Shown: positions 1 to 16,926 of the stretch, in pieces | How positions within the stretch are numbered: the stretch's first letter is position 1 | Layout of the letters: the number at the start of each line of letters is the position of its first letter | The notes under the pieces: model-generated | What the model was told of the DNA's origin: nothing | Database searches by the model: none | What the model saw: only the letters and a program-made list of their open reading frames with translations | Translations under genes and position numbers: made by a program | NCBI GenBank assembly: GCA_024626585.2 | Contig: JANKJI020000004.1 | Coordinates: forward strand, 157,778,593-157,795,518 | DNA length: 16,926 nt | Reading direction: 5' to 3' | Source of the DNA: Ginkgo biloba | Lineage: Eukaryota > Plantae > Ginkgophyta

Positions 1-1173
1 CAGCCAACCAAATAAATGCATGTATGGGGCAAAATACATCCTCAAGTATAGGTGAGTCTCACTAATCCCCAATAGCTCTCCACTTAAGGCCTTTTTTCCC
101 TAAATGAGCCTCTAAGGTTTCTATATTCAAGTAGGGTAAGAGTCTACATAATCATCAAACGAATAATTTTCTAGTGTTAAATGCAACTATCTATCATCAT
201 AGAAGCATTAATTACTTGTAAATACATCCATTAGACCCCCTAATTGGAGTTGCTCTATTCTATATGGGTTATGTTTCCCTTCTTAGGGTTTTCAACCATG
301 TATATTAATTTATGTAATCAGAAAATAGAATTCTTACAATAGCCCACGCTTACTAAAACCTACAAAACAAGGTAAATAGACTTAGAAAGACATAAGAAAG
401 TGAGGCGACTCTAGTATTGCATTCAAAGATGGAAAATAACCATAAACAAGTAATGTACTGAAAACCCATACAAAATAGATATTTAAACTTCTTAATTTAT
501 GGTCACTATTATAAAAGTGAATTAATTTACAAGTTAGAAATAAAGGGACAATTAGACTAGGGTCGACTTGCAGTAGGGATTTTGACCACCTTCTGTTAGC
601 CATGGGAACTGCATATGGGGCTTAATTATTGTAAGCAACCAAACCAATGGCGCATAAATGCAGCCGTCAACACCTAGCAACTATTAGAGATCCTCTAGAC
701 TCCACTCCTCAACCCTTCATTAGTAAAGATTCTAGATGTAGGTCATTGTGACCTCTCTTTGGTATCAGGATGACCCAAAAAAGCTAGGGCATCCATCCTC
801 TACTAATAGTTCAAGGTTTTCGGTATTATAAACCCTAGGTCGACACCGATAGACGCTAACTAGAAACGCTACTGGCTCCAAAAACACTATGGATGCTCCC
901 ATAGGCCATATGCCATGACTACACCAATAGCCATTCGATCCATGACTATGTTAAAGATATCAGAATTATCGCTCTGATACCATGTTAGAAATCGCATGAG
1001 ATGATACTTTAACCATTACAAATTCGAGTATGAACTCATAATTTAAACATCCAAGCATTTCATTTACTTCAGCTAAAACATGAGAGAAAACATTCAAGCA
1101 TGCAGTGAAAATTTCAGACTTGAATCATATATATTCTCACAACTTTATTCATCAATCAAGTTGGCAAATCTAA
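1..1173 (-). mobile_element. LTR retrotransposon 5' end: U5 part of 5' LTR (983-1173, cut by gap), PBS (971-982) and non-coding internal leader (1-970)
   Basis: Minus strand reads ...TTCTAACA|TGGTATCAGAGC, an LTR-terminal CA abutting a perfect tRNA-iMet PBS. No gag-like ORF recognised in the 970 bp downstream. Confidence 0.8.
971..982 (-). promoter_or_regulatory. Primer binding site complementary to the tRNA-iMet 3' end (TGGTATCAGAGC)
   Basis: Plus strand GCTCTGATACCA at 971-982, immediately followed by TGTTAG (LTR end in reverse). Canonical plant LTR-element PBS. Confidence 0.9.
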
Positions 1174-1273: not shown

Positions 1274-1523
1274 ATCCACTTCGAGGGTGGAAACCTCCAA
1301 TACAATATTGCTCAATACAAAAGATACCCTAAAGGGTTTACATGAGAGTACATATAATAGAGAGCATGAGAAGAGGTATGTTGCATGTAAGACAAGTGGC
1401 TTACATGGGTTTACATGCAAGCGAAAATAAGAGAAGAAGACAAGTGTCGAAAGAGAATGAGAGGAGGTAGGTGTAAGGAGATAGAAAGAATAGTAAGAGC
1501 TAACCGTTGGGTTTATTACAACA
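1274..1523 (-). mobile_element. Probable LTR fragment (U3 start) inserted in antisense into the chromovirus integrase
   Basis: Minus strand begins TGTTGTAATAAACCC at 1523 and has a TATA-like CTATTATATG near 1350-1360. Integrase similarity stops abruptly at about 1511-1523. Confidence 0.5.
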
Positions 1524-2172
1524 ATAGGAAACATTCGATAATGAGAATGACACCATTTAGAGCATTGCATAGATATGATCCTCTTGTTGCTTTGGATTTA
1601 GATTTGAAGAACTTTAGAGGGAAGAAACAAATGACATTGAATTGCTAGAGCAAATGCAAGAGGAATTGAGGTAATGCAAAAGGAATTTTGAAAGAGATCA
1701 AGCTTGTGCTCATTTGTATGTGGTTCAACATAGATTGTCACGATCATTCAAAGTGGGAGATACAATTTACTTAAGAGTTACATCGAATTGGCCTTTGTTT
1801 ACAGGAAGGTGCACCATGTTATCACCAAGATATTATGTGCCATTGTAAGTGTTAGAGAAGATAAATGAAGTCACCTATAGATTGTAGTTACCAACACATG
1901 TTAAAATGCATCTAGTCTTTCATGTGAGTTTTCTAAAGAAAGCATTTTCTTGGTTTGATAATGTGATGCCTTCTTTTGTGGATATATAAGAAATGGAGTA
2001 AAAAGTTCATGATACCATAAGAATTCTAGATGAAAGAAGTAGAAGGGTTCAGAATCAAGAAGCAAAAGAATGTCTTGTGCAATGGTCTAATAAACCCATT
2101 GAGGGATCCATGTGGGAATTAGCAACTTTTGTTTGTGAAGCAGGCCTCATTGAGGATAATGAAGGACAATGA
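1514..2172 (+). pseudogene. Decayed Ty3/gypsy chromovirus pol C-terminus: end of integrase core, GPY/F module and chromodomain
   Basis: Manual translation: YNNRKHSIMRMTPFRALHRYDP, a frameshift near 1630, then EQMQEELR*CKRNFERDQ...RSFKVGDTIYLRV...LSPRYYVPL*VLEKINEVTYRL*LPTHVKMHLVFHVSFLKK...RILDERSRRVQNQEAKECLVQWSNKPIEGSMWE, stop at 2170-2172. Fits the FxVGDxVYL / KLSPRYYGPF / HPVFHVSxLK and chromodomain LVQW...STWE consensus. Several premature stops. Confidence 0.93.
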
Positions 2173-3195: not shown

Positions 3196-3245
3196 CAACA
3201 TCATTGTACGTCTCAAACATCAACATTATCGTACGTCTCAAACAT
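3196..3245. repeat. 25-bp tandem duplication (2 copies)
   Basis: CAACATCATTGTACGTCTCAAACAT (3196-3220) and CAACATTATCGTACGTCTCAAACAT (3221-3245), 23/25 identical. Confidence 0.9.
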
Positions 3246-7056: not shown

Positions 7057-7532
7057 TTGCATTTTGTGCTATGGGCCTTTAGGACAACATACAAGCAACT
7101 TATGGGTCAAACACAATTTCAATTAGTCTATAGAAATGAAGTTGTTTTTCTTGTGGAGTTTCAAGTTCCAAGCTTAGAATTGCAATTAAGGAAAGATGGG
7201 GAGAGACAGGGCCCTTATAAGAAAGGCTAAAGCAATTGAATAAGTTGGAGGAGAAGAGATCAATGGCTTTCTAACATCGACAAATCATGCAAGATAGAAT
7301 AAAAGCGATTCATGAGAGAAGGATCAAAGAAATGAGGATCTATCCAAGAGATTAAGTATTGCCATATGATAGCAAGCATAGGGACATGAAAGGGAAATTG
7401 AAAACGAGATAGTTAGGTCCCTTTGTGTTGGAAAAATTATATGAGAATGGATTAGTAAATTTGTCTACAATGAATGGTGAAATTGTGCCAAGACAAGTTA
7501 ATGGTGTTTGTCTGAAATTGCTTAGAGAATGA
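7057..7532 (+). pseudogene. Decayed non-chromovirus Ty3/gypsy (Athila/Tat-like) integrase C-terminus
   Basis: LHFVLWAFRTTYKQLMGQTQFQLVY...VEFQVPSL, a frameshift near 7175, then RIAIKER...ERLKQLNKLEEKR...*VLPYDSK..KGKLKTR*LGPFVLEKLYENGLV...VNGVCLK, stop at 7530-7532. Fits the Athila-type LWAYRT / LNELEE / GKLKSRWxGPF / VNGxRLK motifs. No chromodomain. Confidence 0.9.
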
Positions 7533-10149: not shown

Positions 10150-10581
10150 GCTTTGATACCATGTTAAGAATGCACATTTCGGCAAGAACATGAGAAATAC
10201 CCTCTAGAAAATCAGAAATGCAGCAGAAATTCAGATTTGATTTTACCTCTTGAAACACTATTTATTCAACACATAAACACAATATAACTTCAAGATAACA
10301 TGGGCAATACTTCTCACTGTTCAAGCACATATAACATGATCATAAACACTTCATAAGTGGTACAATCAATTGACAAAACAACCACATATAAATATGATAT
10401 TACTTGCTCAAATTAGAACTTTGAAAATTTTAGATTTTCGACCATTCAAATATCTAATTTCATGCAAATGCATATAAAACAAGGTATGACGAGAATTAAG
10501 TTGGAAGCAAGAGCGTCTTAGAAAAGTTCCAACAACTCTAGGTCTGGAATTGTAGCTTATTGTATTGAGGGTTCATTAACA
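10150..10581 (-). mobile_element. Second tRNA-iMet PBS (10150-10161, 1 mismatch) with adjacent 5' LTR from 10162; candidate far end 10581
   Basis: Minus strand ...TTCTTAACA|TGGTATCAAAGC. Plus-strand TGTTAA at 10162 has an inverted partner TTAACA at 10576-10581 (tentative). The U5 region shares colinear motifs with the LTR at 983-1173. Confidence 0.7.
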
Positions 10582-14416: not shown

Positions 14417-14746
14417 TTCATAGCTTCTTGTAGCTGTCACTTGGGTACCTATTGATCTTGCTTTGAGATATACGAACTTTGTTGTCTTCAGTGTTGATCA
14501 TTGACATCCAGTTGCAAGTGGATTTGCGTTTTATTGCTTGGTTATCAAGTATAGTATTTTGATTGATCGCTTTCATTCACCTCAAATTGGCTCTCTGTTC
14601 ATAGGTTCATGTAGATTTCATTTGGGTACTTTTTGATCTTGTTTTGAGATATAAGAACTTTGTTGTCTTCGGTGTTGATCATTGACATCCAAGTACAAGA
14701 GGATTTGAGTTTCATTGCTTGGTTATCAAATATAGTATTTTGATTG
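14417..14746. repeat. Tandem duplication with 181-bp period (14417-14565 vs 14598-14746)
   Basis: 149-bp ungapped alignment with about 17 mismatches by hand count (about 89% identity). Weaker similarity extends left to about 14390. Confidence 0.92.
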
Positions 14747-15666
14747 GATAAGTCTGCTAGGCTGGTAAGTTTTCTAAAACTTTGATGTTGTAAAATTGTT
14801 TGACGCTACTATAAATTAATATAAATTCCCTATAGAAATTAACATAAACTGTGTCATTATTTAATATAAATTGTTTTCATTAGTATATACCAGTTATGAC
14901 ATGTTTTACGCATAATTGGTACAATTAAAGTCGGGCATCTCTTTCTACAAACATTTCATAGGTTAAATGATGTTATAGATATTATCTATGGTGTATGGAA
15001 TGCATAATAAATGTAGGAAATCCTTCCTTTGCCATGCAAACCTAATTTAGACCTACTTTGATTAAACTCTAGGTCATAGATCTAAAGGTAGCATGGATAT
15101 TGCAACTGATATCCATTAGGGGATAAGATGGCATGGAGAGCCCTAATATTTTGCATGCATTTATGGGCTAAAACTCATTATGGATTGAAATCTACTTAGG
15201 ATGAGGGTTGTAGGGTTGAAACAGTACCCCCTAGTTTGTTATCCCTCATGGTTGGTTATTTGGCTATTTGGTTGAAAGGAGAACCCCTCTGTTCTATTAG
15301 CCATGCTAGTTGAAATAGACTTTAGCGAATGTCACATTGAAAGAATATTCACTAAATTGTTGGTCATAGTACCATAAATTAATATAAATTGATTGAAAAG
15401 ATACTTGTAGAAAGGTACTAAATCTATACCATATGTATAAAAAAGAATCGGAAGTGTATATCCATCCGTGAATTTTATTGGACAAGAATTAAATTTCGTC
15501 ACTAAAGTAGGTTTGAAATGTGACTCCATAATGGTGGACTAACATGGATCCCCCATCACCATGATNNNNNNNNNNNNNNNNNNNNNNNNNNNNNNNNNNN
15601 NNNNNNNNNNNNNNNNNNNNNNNNNNNNNNNNNNNNNNNNNNNNNNNNNNNNNNNNNNNNNNNNNA

Positions 15667-16632
15667 AACAAGCCAAACATTGTAAAGGAAGATAATAAAT
15701 ATGTGAAAGAATCACCTCTAATTTTTAATTTTGAGCACCTTGTTTGTGAAAAAGAAGCGGAAGACCACTCGACTCAAGACAATGGAAACAAATTAAGTCT
15801 AGAATCCCTTACAGAGACTTATCTCAAGGATGCAATTATCACAAACTTTATAAAATCTATCACTGTTTTGAACGCGTGTGAAAATCTGCTACCTCAGGCA
15901 GAGGAACTGGATGCGGTCAGTAGATGTATTGGTATAATAATCGCCAAAAGATGCAAGAGACTAACTAATACATCTGGATTGGTGCACAATACTTTGTTGA
16001 ATCAACAATCTTTGCTAGGAACAATGGAGATGTGTGGAATTAGCATGATTGATAGCTACCATCGTGTTCCCAATTTTCATCCTTCCTTCTCTATTCCCCT
16101 GAAATCCAAAGACTCTTTAATTCGTATAAGAGGATTAGAGCTCCTTAAAATTGAATCTCATTTACGTGATAAATTTATATTGAACAAATTATCAACAAAT
16201 TATATCGTATGGATTTCTTCGACCATGTTGTTTCCATACAAATGCTTTCCTTCATGGATTTCATTAGAGAATTTAAGGGTCTTAGAACTGCAAGGGAATT
16301 TCAAAGAGCTATGGGGGCATGGATCTGATGTACTTGTGAAGTTGCGCAAGCTTGGCATTTATATTGGTGTTTGCCACAATCCAAAAATAATAGGAAACCT
16401 CGTGCACCTCAAAAGGTTACTCTTGGAGAGTTATGCGATGGTTGATTTGCCTAAAGAGATTTTAAAGCATCAATCATTTTGCCCAAAGGGAGAAAAACAA
16501 AGATGGAAAAAAATGAAGCAATGCACAATATCTACAACAATTCAATATTCGAAGGGTCACCAACTATGCATTCAAGCCACGCATCTTGCCAGGTTATCCT
16601 TATTTGAGCAATACACTGGTTCAAATCGCTAA
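15667..16632 (+). CDS. 5'-incomplete chimeric ORF: NPH3/RPT2-like (NRL) fragment fused to NLR NB-LRR linker and first LRRs, then an unrelated tail; gene or young pseudogene
   Basis: The frame is open from the gap (15667, NKPNIVKEDNKY...) to TAA at 16630-16632. 15799-15957 encodes LESLTETYL...KSITVLNACENLLPQAEELDAVSRCIGIIIAKRCK (NRL-like). About 15990-16479 encodes LLNQQSLLGTMEMCGISM...GLELL...IVWIS...FPSWISLENLRVLELQGNFKELW...KLRKLGI...PKIIGNLVHLKRLLL...LPKEI (TNL-type linker plus LxxLxL repeats). Confidence 0.8.
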   Translation, partial: NKPNIVKEDNKYVKESPLIFNFEHLVCEKEAEDHSTQDNGNKLSLESLTETYLKDAIITNFIKSITVLNACENLLPQAEELDAVSRCIGIIIAKRCKRLTNTSGLVHNTLLNQQSLLGTMEMCGISMIDSYHRVPNFHPSFSIPLKSKDSLIRIRGLELLKIESHLRDKFILNKLSTNYIVWISSTMLFPYKCFPSWISLENLRVLELQGNFKELWGHGSDVLVKLRKLGIYIGVCHNPKIIGNLVHLKRLLLESYAMVDLPKEILKHQSFCPKGEKQRWKKMKQCTISTTIQYSKGHQLCIQATHLARLSLFEQYTGSNR

Positions 16633-16926
16633 ACGCAAACTAATCAAACAACAAAGGGTTAAATATTTTAAGTGTTTGAGAAAGATTAAAATTGGAATAT
16701 TCTCAAGGTTAAAATAATATTCCAAAATAAATAAAATGGACTTGTAAAGTATAAAATTTACATTCAATAAAAACAAGTTAAAGTTAACTGAACTCTTAGT
16801 TATATTAGGAGATTACAATAAATAAAGATTTTGAATTAAGTTCCATGCATATAGAATCAAAAGATCAAGTATATACCTCTCAAGCTTCAAAGAGATATTG
16901 TACATATCTTGCAAGGTTGAATGTAT

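Follow-up and report, generated by a model that had tools for sequence, protein, structure and literature searches.

An in-frame fusion of NRL and intron-less TIR-NLR fragments in Ginkgo biloba, tentatively read as a chimeric retrocopy

Partial and chimeric retrocopies arise in plants by template switching (PMC5470649), and the mechanism that generates chimeras and retrocopies is established in plants (PMC5470649, PMC13317346, PMC5664825). Maize Bs1, in which three host gene segments have been joined through a retroelement (PMC13317346), and the retroduplicated NLRs of pepper, potato, tomato and rice (PMC5664825) are examples. In gymnosperms, transposable elements (TEs) have captured approximately 400,000 coding fragments per genome, and about 14% of the carriers hold at least two (PMC13477047). 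NLR immune receptors can also carry a piece of another host protein family in frame with NLR sequence (NLR-IDs; PMC5819176, PMC11218826). The NRL family is a known effector target, as the Phytophthora effector Pi02860 binds potato NRL1 (PMC6099861). A locus of Ginkgo biloba, in which an NRL fragment is joined to a fragment of a TIR-type NLR (TNL), is compared here with these systems.

The DNA analysed is a stretch of 16,926 nt (the window) in which eight gaps separate short contigs. The open +1 frame that carries the fusion begins at the edge of the last contig, immediately 3′ of a 100-N gap, and runs without a stop to its TAA, whereas every other frame of this contig contains 14-26 stops (Table 1). 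Neither a start codon nor a promoter was seen 5′ of the NRL piece in the sequenced contig. In a protein search of the open frame against 1.84 billion cluster representatives, two sets of matches were obtained, one of residues 35-112 to NRL proteins and one of residues 110-270 to gymnosperm TNLs, which is the outcome that an earlier note on this DNA had expected of separate searches with the two blocks. For each of the three parts the best-matching proteins are gene models of Ginkgo biloba, and every protein match points to plant DNA. A metagenome scan gave no match, and the chimera product is absent from both protein collections, an absence that is uninformative because transcript-derived entries are lacking there for its parent Gb_00937 as well. 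The junction between the pieces contains no N and no repeat. The in-frame NRL-TNL fusion is real in the present assembly, and the central observation of the earlier note, an NRL fragment fused in frame to the linker and LRR start of a TIR-type NLR, is borne out by the match to Gb_00937 (E 2e-23) and by the TNL profile (87.9 bits). That note had also placed about 12 codons between the blocks and about 45 residues before the NRL block; the two pieces abut, and the lead is shorter.

Table 1. Features of the fusion contig and its 5′ border (positions in the window)
Feature	Position	Strand	Description
Assembly gap, 100 N	15566-15665	.	Hides 5′ end; open frame enters gap
Last contig of window	15666-16926		1261 bp; carries fusion
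Single open frame	15667-16632	+	321 codons plus TAA (16630-16632); earliest ATG at 16024
Lead	15667-15771	+	35 in-frame codons; no match to upstream NRL, TNL winged helix or Pfam
NRL piece	15772-~15987	+	72 codons; ~aa 104-177 of Gb_00937, between Pfam BTB and NPH3
NRL/TNL junction zone	15988-15993	+	0-6 nt between pieces
TNL piece (linker and LRR start)	15994-16479	+	87.9 bits against gymnosperm TNL profile
Final six codons of TNL NB-ARC exon	15994-16011	+	LLNQQS; LLNQRS in Gb_26264
Six extra nt	16012-16017	+	Exactly at TNL intron 2 site; possibly intron-end remnant
TNL linker exon equivalent	16018-16329	+	G-T-M-E to L-W; first LRR strand at 16273
TNL LRR exon start	16330-16479	+	Intron 3 gone; strands at 16342 and 16408; LRR then stops
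Non-LRR tail	16480-16640	+	In frame to stop at 16630; homologous to end of Gb_21960

Other parts of the window carry retroelement sequence. Two tRNA-Met primer-binding sites, one exact and one with one mismatch, lie at 971-982 (-) and 10150-10161 (-), and are remnants of minus-strand LTR retrotransposons. Two frames, at 1391-1645 (+) and 7057-7227 (+), have what we take to be a resemblance to the end of a Ty3 integrase; Pfam gave no match on either. The contig that precedes the fusion contig contains a 181-bp unit in 1.8 copies that are 88% alike (14417-14746), and a 25-bp doublet lies at 3196-3245 of the window.

The best match of the NRL piece is Gb_00937, a Ginkgo protein with BTB and NPH3 domains (66-70% identity; 66% over 15772-15990), to which it is sister in the tree (100/99); this support, together with the E-value of the match, rules out a chance resemblance. 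The branch leading to the NRL piece is about 17 times longer than that of Gb_00937 (0.40 versus 0.023), and a search of 90% clusters (330-1045 aa) yielded no NRL donor closer than this. Gb_00937 is itself a divergent NRL, with a stem of 0.68 and at most 51% identity to other NRLs over its length. The borders of the piece were set by a codon-profile walk, and extension to either side did not rise above shuffled sequence. The block had previously been placed at 15799-15957, an assignment that was right as to family and too narrow as to extent. Pfam alone does not see the piece because it falls between the BTB and NPH3 models; both of these domains are missing from the window, in which just the intervening segment is represented. 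In NRL genes this segment presumably lies within one exon.

In the structure model of Gb_00937 the NRL piece covers four helices (113-125, 129-138, 140-149 and 152-178), and its ends coincide with helix-loop borders, the piece starting in a loop and stopping before a disordered linker. The N-terminal part of the same model resembles BTB-BACK proteins such as KLHL11 and KBTBD2 with weak E-values. As modelled, the piece is a helical module 3′ of the BTB core rather than a whole Pfam domain, and would comprise the last BTB helix followed by what we infer to be 3-box/BACK-like helices. The corresponding helices of BTB-BACK proteins sit at CUL3 and dimer surfaces.

With regard to the TNL piece, identity to gymnosperm TIR-NLRs is 30-42% (residues 110-270), and its start reads LLNQQS-LL-GTME compared with LLNQRS-GTME in Ginkgo Gb_26264. 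Intron sites were defined by two gymnosperm-type TNL loci (L002 and L004), whose reading frames were checked by joining their exons, and from which the Ginkgo donor may differ. Both loci possess a phase-0 intron between the NB-ARC and linker exons and another after L-W-x(5), the two introns measuring 88 and 144 nt in L002 and 166 and 139 nt in L004, and the short genomic reading frames among the TNL matches end just past the L-W motif. What is new here is that the TNL piece reads across both of these phase-0 intron positions, without any change in length at the second one and with a surplus of six nucleotides at the first. Because both introns are gone, the TNL piece most likely came from spliced mRNA, provided that the Ginkgo donors share the two introns. 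No poly(A) tract follows the TNL piece or the stop codon, and no target-site duplication or LTR flank was recognised in the short 1.26-kb contig. The earlier note had considered splicing into the AG at 16017-16018, which would leave the NRL piece intronic; as a native TNL acceptor this AG is rejected, since it would be in phase 1 and the native TNL intron at this site is in phase 0.

Two further TNL sequences deserve mention in their own right. One TNL contig (L003, 100-260) jumps out of frame from just past the MHD region to the linker and keeps the next intron, and is a mis-spliced or deleted TNL copy. The Ginkgo TNL model Gb_06234 ends a few residues past the point where the LRR stops in the window, which hints either that Ginkgo has TNLs whose LRRs are very short or that the model is in error.

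The sequences on either side of the two pieces could be assigned to neither donor family. The lead was tried as a TNL winged helix and as upstream NRL sequence, and in both cases the signal was not above that of shuffled sequence. At the other end the frame goes on past 16479, the limit of the feature in the earlier note, for 50 non-LRR codons (16480-16629), and these are common to the window and Gb_21960. Tested as LRR, the tail did not score above shuffles, whether it was read in frame or in +2. A short stretch in another frame (16517-16600, +) resembles, we presume, the end of a Ty3 RNase H, in which case the tail would be of retroelement origin. Neither Pfam nor Atlas gave a match for it, and this candidate was dropped. 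An Atlas feature match (0.94) to LRR_3 for aa 30-105 was likewise set aside for its low shared count.

No TIR, NB-ARC, MHD or further NRL sequence was found among the 718 stop-free pieces of the window, the open frame itself entering the gap; as the earlier note had remarked, no MHD motif is visible. The NRL piece stands in the place of the MHD/winged-helix region before the linker, and the LRR consists of approximately three strands (16273, 16342 and 16408) rather than a full solenoid. If translated, the sequenced part would be unable to signal as a receptor, because it has no TIR, no nucleotide-binding switch and only three LRR strands.

A second copy of the 3′ part is present in the gene model Gb_21960, which is 72-74% identical to the window over the LRR strands and homologous in the tail up to approximately position 16637. 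Its N-terminus is unrelated to the frame in the window, and it has no Pfam match. The model seems to be stitched together from a decayed LRR copy and unrelated exons, and is probably not a real gene. Since strands and tail are common to both copies, a short LRR plus tail predates their split. Where the two differ in the LRR, the family agrees with the window seven times and with Gb_21960 six times; private losses at conserved LRR columns number 0 in the window and six in Gb_21960 (P 0.03).

Several observations bear on whether the fused frame has decayed neutrally. The NRL piece carries 15 window-side changes, counted after doubtful changes had been assigned to Gb_00937, and these touch two of the 26 columns whose conservation reaches 70%, compared with 5.6-5.8 in neutral simulation (P 0.017-0.028). 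An entropy test against neutrality gave P 0.016-0.018, and the ratio of 0.56 falls within the range of intact NRL pairs (0.37-0.62). These selection tests concern amino acids only, each with P of about 0.02-0.03, and selection on the chimera is inseparable in them from selection on an unsampled donor. At neutral divergences of 0.15-0.19 per site the chance of remaining stop-free is 0.008-0.027 over 236 codons and 0.001-0.005 over 321 codons, counting substitutions only, so that indels would lower these values; the fused frame contains no frameshift. The stop-free evidence is tempered because a genome scan selects open frames. Transitions are G>A/C>T in 12 cases and the reverse in 8, an excess no more than that commonly seen in plants. 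As an explanation, descent from Gb_00937 by plain neutral decay is weakened by the avoidance of conserved columns, by the absence of LRR losses where Gb_21960 has six, and by the intact frame. The signals are modest, and on them the NRL and LRR pieces look constrained rather than freely decaying, in keeping with the earlier description of the NRL piece as diverged and yet intact.

Collectively, these observations are tentatively explained by a Bs1-like chimeric retrocopy that is possibly a selected gene, a reading to which a probability of roughly 0.45 is assigned. The donors present in the fused frame are a spliced TIR-NLR segment and an NRL segment of the Gb_00937 lineage. Template switching between co-packaged RNAs during reverse transcription by a retroelement would have created the chimera, and purifying selection would afterwards have acted on the fused frame during some or all of its history. 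Gb_21960 would then be a decayed sister copy of the 3′ part of the chimera. If translated, the product would most likely act as a small binding protein in trans, whether as decoy, adaptor or competitor, through its NRL helices, a role that we offer only as a hypothesis. Capture by a Pack-Helitron or Pack-MULE fits less well, because these elements copy genomic DNA with its introns, which are absent here, and because no element ends were seen; neither a Helitron CTAG-T end (+, 3′ of the frame) nor a pair of inverted repeats around the frame is present in the short contig.

It is quite possible, if more doubtful, that the fused frame is a non-functional mosaic of recent copies of unsampled donors, such as a rapidly evolving Gb_00937 paralog and a TNL of divergent sequence, whose constraint was inherited and whose frame is open through luck and youth. 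Such an explanation stays strong because gymnosperm genomes abound in captured fragments (PMC13477047): with so many captures, rare in-frame chimeras are to be expected and will be singled out by a scan. The window, with its primer-binding sites, is TE debris, a decayed second copy exists, and the fused frame lacks a start, core domains and annotation. The NRL piece alone would remain stop-free by chance in 37-46% of cases, and a full-length TNL donor could have escaped notice, being represented by another member of its 50% cluster and falling outside the length filter. The mosaic nevertheless requires that both donors went unseen and that one of them already combined the short LRR with the tail, and the search of 90% clusters (330-1045 aa) revealed no close NRL paralog; moreover, the junction, the 35-codon lead (chance approximately 0.08) and the 50-codon tail would all be in frame by luck. 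A misassembly, by which a fragmented short-read assembly would have put unrelated pieces of two genes into one short contig, is very improbable. The contig is a mere 1261 bp long within a window of eight gaps, which would suit such an error, but the junction is free of N and repeats, the join is in frame, and neither piece copies an annotated gene, so that there is no obvious shared word at which a mis-join could occur.

The integrated-decoy immune receptor proposed in the earlier note is not supported as it stands, and a true NLR-ID is unlikely. It would require an intron-less TIR-NB-ARC in the gap, in the same frame, with the NRL helices placed before the short LRR as effector bait. The frame is indeed open to the gap, both pieces look constrained, functional retroduplicated NLRs are possible (PMC5664825), Ginkgo is rich in NLR-IDs (PMC11218826), and an NRL protein is the target of Pi02860; in the passages of that report consulted, however, the binding site of the effector is not mapped to the NRL segment found here (PMC6099861). 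The MHD/winged-helix end is missing and the lead does not match a winged helix, the other contigs of the window are without TIR or NB-ARC, and the LRR stops after three strands. The loss of introns also counts against this origin, since integrated domains of grasses have mostly kept their introns and retroposition was judged unlikely for them (PMC5819176). The chimera is not filed as an NLR-ID because neither an MHD region nor a full LRR was found. No integrated NPH3 or NRL domain, and no link between NPH3/NRL and NLR-IDs, was found in the literature searched, which covered few subscription papers.

The significance of the locus depends on which of these explanations holds. If expressed and selected, the chimeric retrocopy would be an instance, in a gymnosperm, of reverse transcription creating a new gene out of an immune receptor and a family of CUL3 adaptors known as an effector target, and would represent an RNA route by which pieces of host targets are joined to NLR sequence. 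An NB-ARC in the gap would imply an NRL decoy made through an RNA stage, of which there is none in the literature searched. If close donors exist, the locus would merely add to captured fragments that number in the hundreds of thousands, and would caution that decoy status is not proven by an intact frame plus conserved residues.

Among described systems, maize Bs1 (PMC13317346) likewise holds parts of unrelated host genes in one frame, and the loss of introns from the TNL piece would indicate a similar retro origin for the Ginkgo chimera. The donors differ, being NRL and TNL in Ginkgo, and Bs1, for which both transcript and protein are made, is part of a recognisable LTR element, whereas the Ginkgo chimera is known from its sequence and has no recognised LTR flank. 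The retroduplicated NLRs of pepper, potato, tomato and rice (PMC5664825) have also lost introns through an mRNA stage; those genes are near-complete, whereas the Ginkgo piece is 160 internal codons without an NB-ARC, fused to a foreign gene. NLR-IDs (PMC5819176, PMC11218826) resemble the chimera in that NLR sequence shares its frame with part of a host protein family in which an effector target is known. Unlike them, the chimera has no visible NB-ARC or TIR and a truncated LRR, and its insert is a sub-domain helical module at the MHD region. Compared with Gb_00937, which is an At1g03010-like NRL, the window lacks the BTB core, the NPH3 domain and the coiled coil. With the TE-captured fragments of gymnosperms (PMC13477047) the chimera shares its fragmentary and multi-donor make-up, its TE-rich surroundings and the existence of a second copy, and it differs from them in its long intact frame and in a pattern of constraint like that of a working gene.
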